The notes under the pieces: generated by a model
The model's database searches: none
Told to the model about the DNA's origin: nothing
The model's input: only the letters and a program-made list of their open reading frames with translations
In this document: piece after piece, positions 29,626-39,150 of the stretch
Position numbering within the stretch: position 1 is the first letter of the stretch
Layout of the letters: each line of letters opens with the position of its first letter
Assembly (NCBI GenBank): GCA_946965045.2
Contig: OX337236.1
Location: 2,108,001-2,172,000, forward strand
DNA length: 64,000 bases
Source: Epithemia pelagica
Lineage: Eukaryota > Protista > Bacillariophyta
Reading direction: 5' to 3'
Translations under genes and position numbers: made by a program

Positions 29626-31754
29626 ATGATGAGCGAATCAACAGCGGAAGAAGCTGGTTTTGCTACTACAGAAAAAAGAGGAGAAGATGACGGTGATCAT
29701 GTGGGACTTAGCAAGAGGCGGAAGATCGACCTTATGACCGGAGACGTGGATCTGGGTGCAGCTTCTGTTGGAGCTGACGAAATGATTGTACATGAAGCGA
29801 CAACACCTTTGGATGAAGCGAAGATTGAATCGAAGCCAGCGGCACTGCCAACAGTTCCACCACCAGTGTCAACGGCAGCGGAAACATCAGCAACGCAGGA
29901 GCTGCATGCGTCGACGTCGTCCCGACTGTTTCAAATCCCTGACATCCCTACGACAGATGATTTAGTTGTCAAGGTTGTTGATTTCGAAGACGACATTCAG
30001 CGGGCGCAAATGGAAGCAGACCTTCGCAACGAAAGCAAATTCATATCGAAAATCACTGAGGGAACAACTGCTTGGAAATTCAACAAGGAACGGAGCGAAC
30101 AAATCAAAGGGCTACTTGAATCCAACGAGGTGATAGACGAGCACGGAACTGGCCTTCACTACTACAACCTAAGTGAAGATCATGGCATCGACATGGACAT
30201 GGCAGGAAATCCGAATCTTATCACTCGCCCTCACAGTCGCAGAGTCGTTACTGCAATCGAGGACGTCTGGAAGAATCATCAGCGCACTCTGAGCTATATC
30301 ATTGGACCACCGGGTGTAGGCAAGACTAGGACGTTACAATTGTTGCTTCGACGATTTCTCCTTGACACATCAGGCGATTCGGCAAAAAGCATCCGCTACT
30401 ACAGCCAAAAGGAAGAGTTTGCTTTGTGGATTATTCTCGTTGATGACAGACTTTCGGTTTTCATGGCGACGGAGGAAGAGAATCCGCAGGGATTCTTCAT
30501 GACGGAAAGTCTGTCAGGAAGCATGTTTGAGAAATCCGTGGTTCTTCTTGACCCAAAAGAAGCTGAAAAAGGAGGAGCTGAGTTTGTGCATTCGCGACGC
30601 CACATGGTTGTTGCTTGTAGCGCAGACGAAGAGCATTTTCCAATTGACCCGAGCAAAGTCTTGGAACCTCTTTCACTTCTATATCGGATTGTGGACGCGC
30701 GATGAGCTGCGTCGCGTCACCGAGCTCAAGTTGATACCCCTGGAGAAAGGTGATACGATCGATACTGGCGTCATCGACCAAAGAGCCAATAAAGTTGGAG
30801 AAGCACCGCGATATATTTTTGCGAAAACGCTCTACAACCGCCGTGTCAAGCGCATCCAAGAACTAGCAAAACTGCTTGATGCCGACATTGTCCGCAGCGC
30901 GCTCACGGATAGGGCTGTTGAGCGAAATGGAACCGTTGCTGGCTGTTTCTTTGCCCATATAAACAACTTTTCTGTCGACGGGAGCTCAGACTACTCGATC
31001 CCGAATATTCGATACCTTAGTCGCTTTTCTGTGGCGACTATCTACGAAGCACATCGGTCCACTATGCTGTCGGCTATGGCACAAGCTACCAATGATGACG
31101 GAGGCCTTTTTGAGCTTCTGGCAGGTTGGGACGTCCATACTGGGGGCGACTTTGTAGTTCGAGAGATGGTGTATACGCGGGAAAAATCAGCTGAAGGAGC
31201 TCAGGAAAGTGAGGCGAAGCAAGCAATTCTGAAGTCGACAAGATCTACGCTGTCTCTTGAAGCGCAATCGAAGACCAAGTTTCTTCCACCGGATACGCCA
31301 ACGGAAATCACTCGAACTGGTTGTGTCCAACCTTTGCTGCAGTTTGGCGAAGCTCCATTCGTAGCTGCCACATTTGTTGGTCTTTCAAAGTGCTATCCGG
31401 CCATTGATTACATTGGTAAAACGCCGGGACGTCTACCAAGCTACAACTGGCAATGATCATGATCGAAATGGTTGGATTGAGCTTCTTGTCGATGCAGGTA
31501 TATTGGTCTCTGAAAAGTCACCGCTGGCAGTGGCCGAGGACGCGAAAGACCTCACTTTCTACTGGGTTGTTCCTGCATGGAAAGAGGATAAATGGTCCAA
31601 CGCTGCCAAGACTCTGCGAAGGAAGGACTGTAGCGGACTATCGACAAGAGATATTGCAGTGGCAAACAAGGCCCTGCGGGACCATGTGGTGCAGAGAGTC
31701 CTGCTCATTCCCCTTCATAGAGCGACGGTCGTGACCGCGGCATCATCAATGTAG
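29626..31754 (+). pseudogene. Crinkler/RHS-type P-loop NTPase + REase, copy A' (two 1-nt frameshifts; may be assembly artefacts)
   Basis: Walker A YIIGPPGVGKT, VVLLDP, GEAPRYIF, C-terminal YPAIDY...YQAT...FYWVVP. Near-identical to 35115-37163 except for extra bases in homopolymers near 30663 and 31418-31421. Confidence 0.7.
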
Positions 31755-32057
31755 AGAGTCCGAGTGTCGTACGGATACTTGATTCATCATGCATTGCATA
31801 TAACGCACGTGTTAAGTTTAATCCATTGAATCTTTTGGGGGCGTGACTATGACGATGACGGGGAACAGCTCTCGTTTTCAAACTCTCAATGGGGAAGATC
31901 TCTTCCCAGAAGTTGCAAGACTAGTGGAAGAGAGACCATTCAAAAGTTGCAAGAACGAAGAGACAGAGAAGAATCGAACACTCACCATCCCTCCTCTTCC
32001 GCAAGTCACTCACAATTTCCATCTGGACAAAGCGCTTCCAAAACCACCAACCACACC

Positions 32058-33210
32058 ATGGCAACATCTTCAACCACAACGACTGCCTCCACGATTTGCA
32101 GTATGGATGACTGGAATGTGGATGTGGTGCTGCGGGTGCTTCCCTATTTGTCCTTTTTGGATGCTAATCGTTTCCAGTTGTCTTCGCGTCGCTATATCGT
32201 TTCCAGTTGTCTTCGCGTCGCTATTGGTATTTGGTTCAGGAATACCGTCGTCTCTTTCACACTTCCAACGTGGTCACCATCACCAGAATGGATGGGCGAT
32301 CAGCCTACAGTTGCACAAAGTATGCGCAAGGAATGATGCAATACGCGGTCCATCATAAATTGCAAACTTCGCACAATTTTATTGTCGCTAGTTCTCAACC
32401 GTCAAGTACCTTACGACGAGAGTTACTGGGCTGGATTCCCTCCGACTGTGTCGTTTTGGGGACAATATCCGTTATTTTGCAAACCACCGTTCCCATTTGC
32501 TCGATCGGCCCGGAAGATGGGCTCTTGCTCGCCACCCTACCACCCAATTCGATGTATCCGTTTAGTTTTACCACTACTGGAGAAGCAGGATTACCTACGT
32601 CGTCCTCTGCGAACACGATGAGCTCCACAACTTTGGCCGCCACCCGTGACTTGATTCAGCAATTACAATCTCACGCAATACAGTATTTTGAGGGCAAAAA
32701 GCCCTCAGCAATTTGGATACATGGGATAGAATATAGAGAGAATCAAGTCGATCACGTTTTGGCAACCTTACAACAAGCCTTCCCCCAGACCACTTTGGTC
32801 GGTGGTTTGTGCCGTGGCGGCTTCGTTTCCGAGTCTTTTGACTCTTCAACAACAAGAAACCAGTTGTACACAATGTCTAGGTGGGAATTGAGAGAATGGT
32901 ACTTGTCATTGGGTGGGCGCGAATACAGAGCGTCCCGGAGATGGACCCAAGAGAAATTGAAGAATTGTGTGCGACCAATGTTACACAAAAGATCCTATCG
33001 ATTGCATTTCTTTTCATACGACGATGTGTATTACGAGCCAGAGAGTAGTGTTGTTTTTGGAGTGGCAGTTTTCAATGTTCCGGTACAAGCCGTTGTGTCG
33101 CAAGGATTCGAATCCTTGACGATTCCAGCAACTGGAATACCATCCATTCCCAACACCACACCACAGCCACCCAGGGCATTGGCCAGTAGTATCTTTGTAG
33201 TTCATCAAGC
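32058..33210 (+). pseudogene. F-box/FIST copy F4, frameshifted by a 29-bp tandem duplication and 3'-truncated
   Basis: Unit ATCGTTTCCAGTTGTCTTCGCGTCGCTAT occurs at 32167-32195 and 32196-32224. Homology to F5 ends at CATCAAGC (33210). Confidence 0.85.
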
Positions 33211-34225
33211 CCTCGCAGTTGTGGTTGGCCTTGGTTGTGCAGGGAGGAGCCTGTCCCATTGGATTGGCGGAAGAAGCTCAATGGTGTTTGGAATGCGATC
33301 CTCCTCGTGCCATGTTCCCTCGTGATAATCCAGAGACGAACGCGGGGCAACAGTACTGGAACACCGCAACGACGACCCGCACCCAATCTTTCTCGTTGAC
33401 ACCCGACGAACCTTTCTGCAACAATGATACTCGCAATCAAACTGCAACACACGAGTGGTCCATTCTTCGACGATACTTGGAAGGTGGGTTGGGACGGATC
33501 CACAAGAAAAACCGTCCACCCATGGTTCCTGGAATGTCTTGATCCCATCCTCGGTTGCCACGACAGCAGTGGTGATGATGCGAGGCATCTACGGCCAACC
33601 CCTCTTGGACTTGATGAAGGCAGCAAGGACAACAAGTCCCGTCGTCCAAGACCCGTCACCCACACTGACGCATCCTCCTGGACGACAACGACGACGTCGT
33701 CGTCCGACTCTCAATCCTACCGATTTTCGTCGTGTTCCCCCTCCGTCCCAACGAGAATGCCAAACTTTCCAACAAACATGTCTTTCCCTACGACAATCCT
33801 TATCCTTACCGGCCCTGGTCATGGTGCAGGTTCGAATCGAACAGGGCAAGGGCACATTGATTCCAGGCAGTCGCTTGATTCCGTATTTAACATCAGCACC
33901 CAGCAACACTGCCAACCACAAGGATGGCCACGACAACAGTCATGCACTCGAATCCGGTTCCCCCGAATCCCCCATGGGGTTTGTGACGGCCAGTGTCGTT
34001 TCCCCGTCGCGAGGCCGTGGTCATGGAATGGCCGTGGTGGGTGCCGCTCGATTCCTCGACGCACTCCGTCGGGCACCGACCGATCAAACCTTGGTGCAAG
34101 TTTGCGAATTTGCCACGAGTCCACACCAATCTCTGGACCAGCGTCGTCTCTTGGCTCATGTGGTAATAGCTGGTAGGAAACCCACTCATGCTCCGTTGTT
34201 GGTTTCGATCCGGCCACTCTTGTAA
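33211..34225 (+). pseudogene. POP1: 3' fragment of POP1 (RNase P/MRP subunit): POPLD + C-terminal domain, frameshifted near 33520
   Basis: LWLALVVQGGACPIGLAE...MFPRDNPETNAG (POPLD-like) and MGFVTASVVSPSRGRGHGMAV (POP1 C-term-like). No 5' half is present. Confidence 0.7.
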
Positions 34226-34727
34226 CACAGGCACACATATACACTCCTGTTCCTTGTGGGCTTGTGGGATATGACTCGAGAGAACTAGACTGGTGCGGGT
34301 TTTCCATGGCTGACCGCGACACACCCAAACGTTGATGTTCGTTTCTCGTTTGTCCCGGTGCCCTTGGGCAGAGTAGTATGAAATGTCCTCCATCATTTCC
34401 TCCAGCAAATGTGGAGAAGTAGATCGCTGTGCTAGAAAATCTTGTTCCACTATTTCGTCTAGAACAATCGTATGGATCAAGAACATTTTCTGGGTCATAT
34501 GAGTATAGGAGTATTAACATTAGTGTCGTGGGTGGGTGTCGTGGTGGTGGTAGAGTGGGTAGTGGTAGTCGGTCGCGGAAGAGAATTCTTCGGTCGCGGA
34601 ATAAGTCAGGCGGACAGCGGACAGGCAGCCATGGTATCTTTTGTTGGACGCGCGGCATGATGGTCGGTCCAGACCATTCGAGACATCCTCTGTTCCTGGC
34701 AAGGCAGTCACCATCATCATCATCACC

Positions 34728-37163
34728 ATGATGATGGCCACCACCACCGCCGCCGCCACCCGTGGGATTGGCGTTTGGTGTCGCCACAGGATTTCATTGC
34801 CATTGATCCATTCCAAGACCAACAAAACGATTGGAATAGTGGCATCCTGCAACCCGGCTGGGACACTTGGAACATGTCTTGCCGGAACCACGGTGCGGGC
34901 GTTGTCGTCGTCTTGTTCATCATCCATCCTGCTCTCCTCCTCGCCCCTGGGTGGATCCACCATCCGTCACCATCCAAACACAATTTGTGGTTCTTTTTCA
35001 CAAACCATGGCAGTCTCCAATCCCCTCTTGTTGGGAGTTCCGAGCATTTCTCGTGTTCCAGTGTGGCATCACCAACAACACCGCGGCATGGCGGGTCGCA
35101 AGAAACGAAAATCACATGTGGGACTTAGCAAGAGGCGGAAGATCGACCTTATGACCGGAGACGTGGATCTGGGTGCAGCTTCTGTTGGAGCTGACGAAAT
35201 GATTGTACATGAAGCGACAACACCTTTGGATGAAGCGAAGATTGAATCGAAGCCAGCGGCACTGCCAACAGTTCCACCACCAGTGTCAACGGCAGCGGAA
35301 ACATCAGCAACGCAGGAGCTGCATGCGTCGACGTCGTCCCGACTGTTTCAAATCCCTGACATCCCTACGACAGATGATTTAGTTGTCAAGGTTGTTGATT
35401 TCGAAGACGACATTCAGCGGGCGCAAATGGAAGCAGACCTTCGCAACGAAAGCAAATTCATATCGAAAATCACTGAGGGAACAACTGCTTGGAAATTCAA
35501 CAAGGAACGGAGCGAACAAATCAAAGGGCTACTTGAATCCAACGAGGTGATAGACGAGCACGGAACTGGCCTTCACTACTTCAACCTAAGTGAAGATCAT
35601 GGCATCGACATGGACATGGCAGGAAATCCGAATCTTATCACTCGCCCTCACAGTCGCAGAGTCGTTACTGCAATCGAGGACGTCTGGAAGAATCATCAGC
35701 GCACTCTGAGCTATATCATTGGACCACCGGGTGTAGGCAAGACTAGGACGTTACAGCTGTTGCTTCGACGATTTCTCCTTGACACATCAGGCGATTCGGC
35801 AAAAAGCATCCGCTACTACAGCCAAAAGGAAGGGTTTGCTTTGTGGATTATTCTCGTTGATGACAGACTTTCGGTTTTCATGGCGAAAGAGAATCCGGAC
35901 GGATTCTTCATGACGGAAAGCCTGTCAGGAAGCATGTTTGAGAAATCCGTGGTTCTTCTTGACCCAAAAGAAGCTGAAAAAGGAGGAGCTGAGTTTGTGC
36001 ATTCGCGACGCCACATGGTTGTTGCTTGTAGCGCAAACGAAAAGCATTTTCCACTTGACCCGAGCAAAGTCTTGAACCTCTTTCACTTCTATGTCGGATT
36101 GTGGACGCGCGATGAGCTGCGTCGCGTCGCCGAGCTCAAGTTGATACCCCTGGAGAAAGGTGACACGATCGATTCTGGCGTCATCGACCAAAGAGCCAAT
36201 AAAGTTGGAGAAGCACCGCGATATATTTTTGCGAAAACGCTCTACAACCGCCGTGTCAAGCGCATCCAAGAACGAGCAAGACTGCTTGATGCCGACATTG
36301 TCCGCAGCGCGCTCACGGATAGGGCTGTTGAGCGAAATGGAACCGTTGCTGGCTGTTTCTTTGCCCATATAAACAACTTCTCTGTCGACGGGAGCTCAGA
36401 CTTCTCGATCCCGAATATTCGATACCTTAGTCGCTTTTCTGTGGCGACTATCTACGAAGCACATCGGTCCACTATGCTGTCGGCAATGGCACAAGCCACC
36501 AATGATGACGGAGGCCTTTTTGAGCTTCTGGCAGGTTGGGACGTCCATACTGGGGGCGACTTTGTAGTTCGAGAGATGGTGTACACGCGGGAAAAATCAG
36601 CTGAAGGAGCTCAGGAAAGTGAGGCGAAGCAAGCAATTCTGAAGTCGACAAGATCTACGATGTCTCTTGAAGCGCAATCGAAGACCAAGTTTCTTCTACC
36701 GGATACGCCAACGGAAATCACTCGAACTGGTTGTGTCCAACCTTTGCTGCAGTTTGGCGAGGCTCCACTCGTAGCTGCCACATTTGTTGGTCTTTCAAAG
36801 TGCTATCCGGCCATTGATTACATTGGTAAACGCCGGGACGTTTACCAAGCTACAACTGGCGATGATCATGATCGAAATGGTTGGATTGAGCTTCTTGTCG
36901 ATGCAGGTATATTGGTCTCTGAAAAGTCACCGCTGGCAGTGGCCGAGGACGCGAAAGACCTCACTTTCTACTGGGTTGTTCCTGCATGGAAAGAGGATAA
37001 ATGGTCCAACGCTGCCAAGACTCTGCGAAGGAAGGACTGTTGCGGACTATCGACAAGAGATATTGCAGTGGCAAACAAGGCCCTGCGGGACCATGTTGTG
37101 CAGAGAGTCCTGCTCATTCCCCTTCATAGAGCGACGGTCGTGACCGCGGCATCATCACTGTAG
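34728..37163 (+). CDS. Crinkler/RHS-type NTPase + REase, intact copy A with a chimeric presequence-like N-terminus (811 aa)
   Basis: Uninterrupted ORF with the same NTPase/REase motifs as A'. The first about 130 aa (34728-35114) are not shared with A' and contain no D or E. Confidence 0.75.
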   Translation: MMMATTTAAATRGIGVWCRHRISLPLIHSKTNKTIGIVASCNPAGTLGTCLAGTTVRALSSSCSSSILLSSSPLGGSTIRHHPNTICGSFSQTMAVSNPLLLGVPSISRVPVWHHQQHRGMAGRKKRKSHVGLSKRRKIDLMTGDVDLGAASVGADEMIVHEATTPLDEAKIESKPAALPTVPPPVSTAAETSATQELHASTSSRLFQIPDIPTTDDLVVKVVDFEDDIQRAQMEADLRNESKFISKITEGTTAWKFNKERSEQIKGLLESNEVIDEHGTGLHYFNLSEDHGIDMDMAGNPNLITRPHSRRVVTAIEDVWKNHQRTLSYIIGPPGVGKTRTLQLLLRRFLLDTSGDSAKSIRYYSQKEGFALWIILVDDRLSVFMAKENPDGFFMTESLSGSMFEKSVVLLDPKEAEKGGAEFVHSRRHMVVACSANEKHFPLDPSKVLNLFHFYVGLWTRDELRRVAELKLIPLEKGDTIDSGVIDQRANKVGEAPRYIFAKTLYNRRVKRIQERARLLDADIVRSALTDRAVERNGTVAGCFFAHINNFSVDGSSDFSIPNIRYLSRFSVATIYEAHRSTMLSAMAQATNDDGGLFELLAGWDVHTGGDFVVREMVYTREKSAEGAQESEAKQAILKSTRSTMSLEAQSKTKFLLPDTPTEITRTGCVQPLLQFGEAPLVAATFVGLSKCYPAIDYIGKRRDVYQATTGDDHDRNGWIELLVDAGILVSEKSPLAVAEDAKDLTFYWVVPAWKEDKWSNAAKTLRRKDCCGLSTRDIAVANKALRDHVVQRVLLIPLHRATVVTAASSL

Positions 37164-37466
37164 AGAGTCCGAGTGTCGTACGGATACTTGATTCATCATG
37201 CATTGCATATAACGCACGTGTCAAGTTTAATCCATTGAATCTTTTGGGGGCGTGACTATGACGATGACGGGGAACAGCTCTCGTTTTCAAACTCTCAATG
37301 GGGAAGATCTCTTCCCAGAAGTTGCAAGACTAGTGGAAGAGAGACCATTCAAAAGTTGCAAGAACGAAGAGACAGAGAAGAATCGAACACTCACCATCCC
37401 TCCTCTTCCGCAAGTCACTCACAATTTCCATCTGGACAAGGAGCTTCCAAAACCACCTACCACACC

Positions 37467-39150
37467 ATGGCAACATCTTCAACCACAACGACTGCCTCCA
37501 CGATTTGCAGTATGGATGACTGGAATGTGGATGTGGTGTTGCGGGTGCTTCCCTATTTGTACTTTTTGGATACAAATCGTTTCCAAAAGTCTTCGCGTCG
37601 CTATTGGTATTTAGTTCAGGAATACCGTCGTCTCTTTCACACTCCCAACGTGGTCACCTTCACCAGAATGGATGGGCGATCAGCCTACAGTTGCACAAAG
37701 TATGCGCAAGGAATGATGCAATACGCGGTCCATCATAAATTGCAAACTTCGCACAATTCTATTGTCGCTAGTTCTCAACCGTCAAGTACCTTACGACGAG
37801 AGTTACCGGGCTGGATGCCATCCGACTGTGTCGTTTTGGGGACAATATCCGTTATTTTGCAAACCACCGTTCCCATTTGCTCGATCGGCCCGGAAGATGG
37901 GCTCTTGCTCGTCACCCTACCACGCAATTCGATGTATCCGTTTAGTTTTACCACTACTGGAGAAGCAGGATTACCTACGTCGTCCTCTGCGAACACGATG
38001 AGGTCCACAACTTTGGCTGCCACCCGTGACTTGATTCAGCAATTACAAACGCAATACAGTATTTTGAGGGCAGAAATCCCTCAGCAATTTGGATACATGG
38101 GATAGAAAATAGAGAGAATCAAGTCGATCACGTTTTGGCAACCTTACAACAAGCCTTCCCCCAGACCACTTTGGTCGGTGGTTTGTGCCGTGGCGGCTTC
38201 GTTTCCGAGTCTTTTGACTCTTCAACAACAACAAACCAGTTGGACACAATGTCAAGGTGGGAATTGAGAGAATGATATTTGTCATTGGGTGGGCACGAAT
38301 ACAGAGCGTCCCGGAGATGGACCCAAGAGAAATTGAAGAATTGTGTGCGACCAATGTTTATCCTATCGATTGAAAAGACGATGTGTATGACGAGCCAGAG
38401 AGTAGTGTTGTTTTTGGAGTGGCAGTTTTCAATGTTCCGGTACACGCCGTTGTGTCGCAAGGATTCGAATCCTTGACGCTTCCAGCAACTGGAATACCAT
38501 CCATTCCCAACACCACACCACAGCCACCCACGGCATTGGCCAGTAGTATCTTTTTAGTTCATCAAGCTGCCTATTATCGTCCGGGTCAGGATGGGTACAT
38601 ATTTCAAACCGATCCTCCCTCTGCTATTGATGAGGGACAAACGATAACCGTTCCAGATTCCTCTCTATAGGGCTTCCCCTCGTATCACATGATTCGACAA
38701 ATTTGCAATACGGATACAGGACAAGTTTACACACCAGCCGAATTTCAAAGCCAATATGGCGCTCCGGCCTTGATTGGAATGCAACGTTCGGGTGAAAATG
38801 GATTTACCTTGTATCAACCTCATGAAATATCCGATCAATACGATGCTTACATCATTTTGCATACCGGCCCGGAACCAGCTGAGAACGGTCCGGTAGTTGT
38901 AGGTGCGGTGAGCAGTGGTACAGTCAATCGGATCATGATGAATATGGACAAAGAGCCTGTGTCCATCGTAATGCGGCCGTCTTAGTCCTGTTTGTTACCC
39001 CGCCCCAAGAGCCACCTTCATTTGCTTCCTTGTCCCATGCAGACATTCAAGATGATCCCGAAACTATTCAACTAGCGATTCAATCACACTTGTTGCGTGG
39101 ACAACGGCCCATTAACCAACCGCAAGATGCTGTGAGACTGGAAACTGATT
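37467..39150 (+). pseudogene. F-box/FIST copy F5 (frameshifts, stops, internal deletions)
   Basis: Homologous to F4/F3. Frameshift near 38050, TGA near 38273 and TAG at 38668. Its 3' flank matches the F3 3' flank (13381-13509). Confidence 0.85.

Follow-up and report, generated by a model that had tools for sequence, protein, structure and literature searches.

Here, we describe a chimeric gene, referred to as A, in a stretch of 64,000 nucleotides of the genome of the diatom Epithemia pelagica (the window, which corresponds to positions 2108001-2172000 of the contig called C9 below; the genome comprises 60.5 Mb in 23 contigs). It is nearly certain from the sequence that A arose by duplication, with the 5' end of a second gene, D, placed in frame before the body of a gene for a predicted nucleoside triphosphatase (NTPase) with a probable restriction endonuclease (REase) fold. 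We lean, by a modest balance of probability, towards reading A as a young chimera whose D-derived leader sends this predicted NTPase/REase-fold protein to mitochondria, or to mitochondria and the nucleus. Coordinates of A and of its parental-type copy, A', are positions of the window throughout.

The window holds two copies of a 3.5-kb segment, at 29698-33210 on the side of A' and at 35115-38567 on the side of A, which are 98% identical over the first 2,498 nt and 95% identical from there as far as 33210/38567. A runs on the plus strand from an ATG at 34728 to a stop at 37163 and forms, as an earlier note on this DNA had claimed, a fused open reading frame (ORF) of 811 codons that is free of stops and frameshifts. 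The left edge of homology between the copies, which the same note had placed at 35115/29698, proved exact on alignment. A' starts at 29626 and reads MMSESTAEEAGFATTEKRGEDDGD-HVGLSKRRK, an N-terminus as acidic as had been stated. Relative to both A and a second A copy (described below), A' carries two 1-nt insertions, which leave it as three ORF pieces.

The remainder of A was traced to D. The interval 34225-35112 recurs at six further sites with 96-99% identity, all of them on C9, 170-200 kb upstream and on the opposite strand; this leader module thus has seven copies, which head D itself, two A-type chimeras, and several genes for proteins with WW domains. A search of the genome for the donor, as the earlier note had advised, located D about 200 kb away on the minus strand of the same contig (C9:1911218-1911955 for the part from MAGRKKRK), and the proposal that A had captured the 5' end and promoter of a host gene is borne out in that the donor of this 5' end, with about 500 bp of DNA upstream of it, is present in the genome. 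The D frame goes from the same MMMATTT through HRGMAGRKKRK-LSAKEKHRRKMKDKQK..., 245 residues to its stop, and leaves the shared part as ...RKKRK-LSAKEKHRRK. In a multiple alignment, D equals A up to 35112 (...CGAAAAT), A' equals A from 35115 (CATGTGGGA), and two bases lie between. Contigs from four independent DNA runs break at this junction, with loose ends that continue into D (at 35112) or into the sequence upstream of A' (at 35115). By the fusion, 129 codons took the place of 24 native ones, and the frame was kept. Both parents expected of a chimera made by segmental duplication are thus present, and homology to each ends at one junction. Since the two limits fall together, it is A that is recombinant, derived from D on one side and from an A'-like gene on the other. 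The parts concerned are as follows.

29626-31754, plus strand: A', the parental-type copy, with its native acidic N-terminus of 24 codons before HVG; now three ORFs
34225-34727, plus strand: D-derived upstream DNA, comprising the 3' end of the gene that precedes D, an intergenic/promoter region, and a probable 5' untranslated region (UTR), which were duplicated along with the leader
34728-35090, plus strand: presequence-like ORF free of Asp and Glu, equal to codons 1-121 of D (MMMATTT...HHQQHRGM); R119-G120-M121↓A122 forms an R-3 motif (the arrow marks the putative processing site)
35091-35112, plus strand: the first seven codons of mature D (AGRKKRK) and one more base, with which homology to D ends in the seven-copy alignment
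35113-35114, plus strand: two-base junction, CA, assignable to neither parent in the seven-copy alignment, with the loose ends at 35112/35115
35115-35336, plus strand: start of the A body at its codon 25 (HVGLSKRRKIDLM...), a predicted disordered linker with KRRKI(D/E)LM; predicted local distance difference test (pLDDT) score below 50 over body residues 1-74

A matrix-targeting presequence with an R-3 MPP/Icp55 site is classically described as a basic, acid-poor extension at the N-terminus whose last residues read R-x-(F/Y/L)↓(A/S). The N-terminus of A resembles such an extension: the interval 34728-35114 encodes 129 residues, none of them Asp or Glu (19 Ser, 13 Thr, 12 Gly, 11 Leu, 10 Ala, and 9 Arg), and this S/T/R-rich region, which had been put at about 130 acid-free residues, ends as claimed in QQHRGM-AGRKKRK, followed by S, with an R-3-type motif in its M variant. 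The family of D provides the comparison. A word search retrieved 39 homologues and a profile search 60, from diatoms wherever they are named, among them Epithemia clementina (52% identity; ACA910_014542, P0002), Discostella, Cyclostephanos, and a Bacillariaceae metagenome-assembled genome. Their alignment has a conserved core (QH.EWV.FQ.SI.V.GFETGQ; RYSDEETERLLAEAY..IP.R.GKRGTRNLKRQ), which is preceded, in order, by a leader, an R-x-[F/M]-[A/G/S/T] motif, and a K-rich linker. Ahead of the motif, 17 of the 20 aligned D orthologues carry 20-97 residues with 0-2 Asp/Glu as against 1-8 Lys/Arg, typical starts being MSLLASQVTALTRQVGRISL...; among ORFs from MMETSP transcripts, P0190 has about 100 acid-free residues ending in RWF↓SS and P0188 has 43 residues ending in RWF↓AS. 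The RGM↓AG of A and D aligns with RSF↓AT, RYF↓AS, RPF↓AS, and RWF↓SS of the orthologues, and M in place of F/Y/L occurs here and in two D orthologues (RGMAG/RGMTG). What had been a guess from composition, that the N-terminus is presequence-like, is now better supported because the D N-terminus aligns positionally with acid-poor leaders of orthologues that end in an R-3 motif. The D leader is probably a cleavable mitochondrial presequence, and A contains it in full, with the processing motif and the first seven residues of the mature part of D.

Under a first-order Markov model of local composition, the probability that the leader interval would lack stops is 0.028, that it would lack Asp and Glu 0.001, and that it would lack both 5e-5. 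The five other frames across the leader are also long and open, with 6-20 acidic residues in each; openness is therefore partly compositional, but the absence of acidic residues is not. As a separate observation on this DNA, all six frames over 34400-35400 contain stop-free stretches of 104-265 codons, and one ENA gene call took a 153-codon, His-rich ORF in another frame (MMVGPDILCSWQGSHHHHHHH...). The ENA gene calls were set aside as evidence on start codons, being mutually inconsistent: they begin D at MAVSNPLL and the second A copy at MTGDVDLG, and they include the other-frame ORF.

Comparison among copies is suggestive of constraint on the leader ORF in the chimeras. When the window unit (33211-38567) is compared with its sister unit of the array, the leader ORF differs at 0 of 385 positions and every other segment by 1.2-2.6%. 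Across the seven copies of the module, the 454 aligned nucleotides upstream of the first ATG vary at 10 sites and contain about seven indels, of which most are not multiples of 3, whereas the 385-nt leader ORF contains one variable site and one 3-base in-frame indel (17 versus 2 changes; Fisher p = 0.014 for substitutions and 0.002 with indels).

Neither the leader nor its fusion to another body is particular to A: the leader also heads the second A copy and several WW-domain genes. The second A-type chimera is intact, with 832 codons (C9:1937737-1940232), and lies directly downstream of a complete POP1 gene, a 928-codon ORF (L024:4339-7077) that carries PF06978 and PF08170 and whose stop abuts the start of the D module. 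Further copies recur in tandem about every 5.68 kb (C9:1911000-1935100, minus strand), and in each unit of this array the D module and the first 37 codons of the A body lead in frame into a two-WW-domain protein (B-type). Two of these B-type copies keep frames of 906-907 codons, and the others are split; an un-fused paralogue of the WW protein is found at C9:1901289-1903700. The B-type bodies were considered as relatives of the A body and ruled out (hhalign probability 0.14).

The body of A, called a Crinkler nuclease in the earlier note, is probably a header-less Crinkler/RHS-type NTPase with a probable REase-fold domain, as judged from structural models and from relatives; the Crinkler/RHS type of the NTPase stands, no Crinkler header is present, and nuclease is too strong a label. 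Two domains follow the linker.

35337-36401, plus strand: AAA+/STAND-like P-loop NTPase of predicted Crinkler/RHS type, plus a helical continuation (Walker A GPPGVGKT at 35721-35744; LLDP(K)E at about 35955)
36402-37163, plus strand: C-terminal domain of probable restriction endonuclease (PD-(D/E)xK-like) fold (AID from 36810; VYQAT from 36840)

In Pfam, A itself has only sub-threshold P-loop matches, located around GPPGVGKT. An exhaustive HMMER search yielded 126 relatives of the A body, and 9 of 52 that were aligned match PF07999, the trypanosome RHSP P-loop domain (best E 3.7e-11); membership of A in the RHS-type P-loop group is therefore transitive. A direct search of the genome for PF07999 gave no match, but the control genomes were silent as well, which makes this negative uninformative. 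An AlphaFold model of the body (pLDDT 80; predicted template modelling score 0.82) retrieved the AAA+/STAND ATPases RuvB, CED-4, NLRC4, and RFC with Foldseek, at E of about 1e-4. The C-terminal 253 residues, modelled alone (AlphaFold 2; pLDDT 84), had no significant match in Foldseek. In a VIA structure search, the top rows for this domain were nearly all REase-fold nucleases (R.BspD6I, Card1, Bse634I, FokI, Can2, SgrAI, Cfr10I, and CdiA-CT), with Z of just 4-5.2, which the tool rates as middling. The C-terminal family consensus, LIDFAGPGRxVYQVT (ID...x9...YQxT), has a nearly invariant Q, and Q and T stand where E and K are usual.

As summarized in PMC5289972 (citing Zhang et al. 2016), the RHSP P-loop domain has been united with Crinkler C-termini under the name ‘CR’ proteins, the commonest architecture of which is NTPase, helix-turn-helix, and REase. 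The protein encoded by A is like these in its RHSP-related P-loop NTPase, in a C-terminal domain for which the top structural matches, at middling Z, are REase-fold nucleases, in its basic motif resembling a nuclear localization signal (NLS), and in the highly variable N-terminal regions of its relatives, in which 0-430 residues precede the NTPase. It is unlike them in that it lacks the PF20147 ubiquitin-like-type header and the LxLFLAK and HVLVxxP motifs, has no secretion signal, falls below every Pfam threshold, and belongs to a diatom rather than a pathogen; its ‘header’ is a mitochondrial-type presequence taken from a housekeeping-like gene. PF20147 was matched in none of A, A', and the 52 relatives, and inspection of the A and A' N-termini found no hydrophobic signal-peptide core of the sort expected for a CRN secretion signal in the strict sense. 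Elsewhere in the genome, PF20147 has marginal matches only, at C6:3199530-3201599 and C7:407346-433550 (23-26 bits), and these may be genuine header-bearing CR proteins.

Two close non-self relatives of the A body, P0041 and P0042, lack the D leader. P0041 (47-52% identity) begins MKKKRKIELM; in P0042, an acidic stretch, ...KQEREVEDEADRG, leads into GKRRKIDLM. Because these leaderless proteins start near KRRKI(D/E)LM, the acidic N-terminus of A' is of the ancestral type, and the possibility raised in the earlier note, that the leader is itself ancestral in A homologues, is contradicted. The conserved basic motif KRRKI(D/E)LM is probably an NLS. In A, the leader is thus followed by two basic clusters, RKKRK from D and KRRK from the A family.

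In the fusion, some 500 bp of DNA from upstream of D, its initial 128 codons, and a single additional base became joined, via the two-base junction, in frame to codon 25 of an A'-type gene. Given translation from the ATG at 34728, the product would be a precursor with an import signal and the processing site RGM↓AG, followed by RKKRK and KRRK. The most likely outcome would be mitochondrial import, or mitochondrial/nuclear dual targeting, of an ancestrally nuclear protein, and the action of the NTPase-REase module on nucleic acid, whatever its kind, would then take place in a new compartment. That the product attacks mitochondrial DNA (mtDNA) is speculation.

Several points weigh against mitochondrial targeting or against selection for it. 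The two strong basic clusters after the leader could pull the protein to the nucleus, and 121 residues would be an unusually long presequence; because the leader is long and both clusters come after it, nuclear or dual targeting is a serious alternative. Besides 34728, in-frame ATGs occur at 35007, 35088 (MAGRKKRK), and 35151, and starts at any of these three would leave a short leader or none. The leader of A and that of Epithemia clementina are not significantly similar by BLASTP (E = 0.3), and an N-terminal alignment of leaders gives no more than a suggestive ...TR..G...RISL resemblance. Searches bearing on the function of D had no informative result: none of the 60 members of the profile search has a functional name, Pfam gave only a chance-level match to Phosducin, a sequence-profile search of the PDB gave nothing, and matches in the ESM Atlas did not rise above noise. 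Gene conversion among the seven copies could also account for the leader's low divergence, but it would be expected to homogenize the upstream part of the module too. For A, A', and the second A copy, the ratio of nonsynonymous to synonymous divergence (dN/dS) comes to 0.5-0.7, with about 30 substitutions, which we judge too few to tell from neutrality. As for expression, the four runs of the organism that contain the sequence behave as genomic assemblies (even cover, contigs of at most 509 kb, and breaks at repeat junctions). In a search of runs, one metatranscriptome matched 5% of the sequence words.

A rival account, which we regard as unlikely though deserving of attention, is that the D module provides only a promoter and 5' UTR and that translation starts at M121 (35088) or M142 (35151), with a nuclear Crinkler/RHS-type product that has gained at most an extra basic cluster strengthening its NLS. 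The ATG at 35088 is flanked by G at both -3 and +4, M occupies the motif position in two D orthologues as well, and several frames are open over the leader, so that an open frame alone is weak evidence of coding. Such an account also agrees with the conservation of KRRKI(D/E)LM at the N-terminus of A-family relatives and with the reported nuclear location of CRN proteins (PMC5289972). It does not explain why acidic residues are absent from this frame only (P = 0.001), nor why D orthologues, including complete ORFs derived from transcripts, have long leaders before the same motif; moreover, no segment of the duplicated unit is as conserved as the 385-nt ORF, whereas the DNA just upstream varies and has frame-breaking indels.

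We find it somewhat less credible still that A is a by-product of a duplication-prone region, unexpressed or unselected and intact through its youth only. The A copies differ by about 2% at synonymous sites, which together with their dN/dS would fit this explanation, as would the facts that the parental-type A' is already frameshifted, that several sister chimeras of the array are broken, and that one-third of random junctions are in frame. Against it, both A-type chimeras retain open frames (811 and 832 codons), the leader ORF has fewer changes than its flanks, the successive D/A and A/B junctions each preserve the frame, and 906-907 codons remain open in two B-type copies. If A is not expressed, it would be no more than an ordinary by-product of this kind of region.

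The mitochondrial or dual-targeting reading may be compared with a process described in plants, in which mitochondrial genes transferred to the nucleus acquire their presequences from resident nuclear genes through duplication or exon shuffling. The case of A is similar in that a pre-existing presequence-type leader and its promoter region were duplicated out of one nuclear gene and placed in frame before the coding sequence of another; it differs in that the recipient is a conflict-type NTPase/nuclease-like gene with an ancestral NLS-like motif, not a formerly mitochondrial gene, and in that the event is very recent and was repeated on several bodies in a tandem array. Relative to the D family, A has taken its first 128 codons from D, with a leader ORF that is 100% identical and includes RGM↓AG, but it is missing the entire conserved D core (QH.EWV.FQ.SI.V.GFETGQ ... 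RYSDEETERLL...). No Crinkler-type protein with a mitochondrial presequence turned up in the literature searched, of which the top results were considered; this is not proof of absence.

If A is expressed from the first ATG, a protein would have changed compartment in one mutational step, with import signal and promoter gained together, and the ‘header swapping’ known from Crinkler/RHS-type proteins would extend to an organelle-targeting header. The event is open to experimental dissection because both parents and the product share one genome at about 2% divergence. We also considered, as a decidedly improbable extension, that the D leader is a portable mitochondrial-targeting cassette placed repeatedly before conflict-type genes (two NTPase-REase copies and several WW-domain genes). 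Were that so, the diatom would be evolving nuclear-encoded, mitochondria-directed proteins that act on nucleic acid, for instance in control or elimination of mtDNA or in defence inside the organelle.

Two neighbouring features complete the description of the duplicated DNA. One lies just upstream of the D module and moved with the duplicated unit.

33211-34224, plus strand: 3' fragment, about 1 kb, of POP1 (RNase P/MRP subunit), homologous to the end of the 928-codon ORF

The other is a gene downstream of both A' (32207-33325) and A (37356-38105), with a weak match to the FIST N-domain (PF08495, E = 0.0026). This FIST-like gene was co-duplicated with the A body, and the homology between the two copies stops at 33210/38567, within or close to it.

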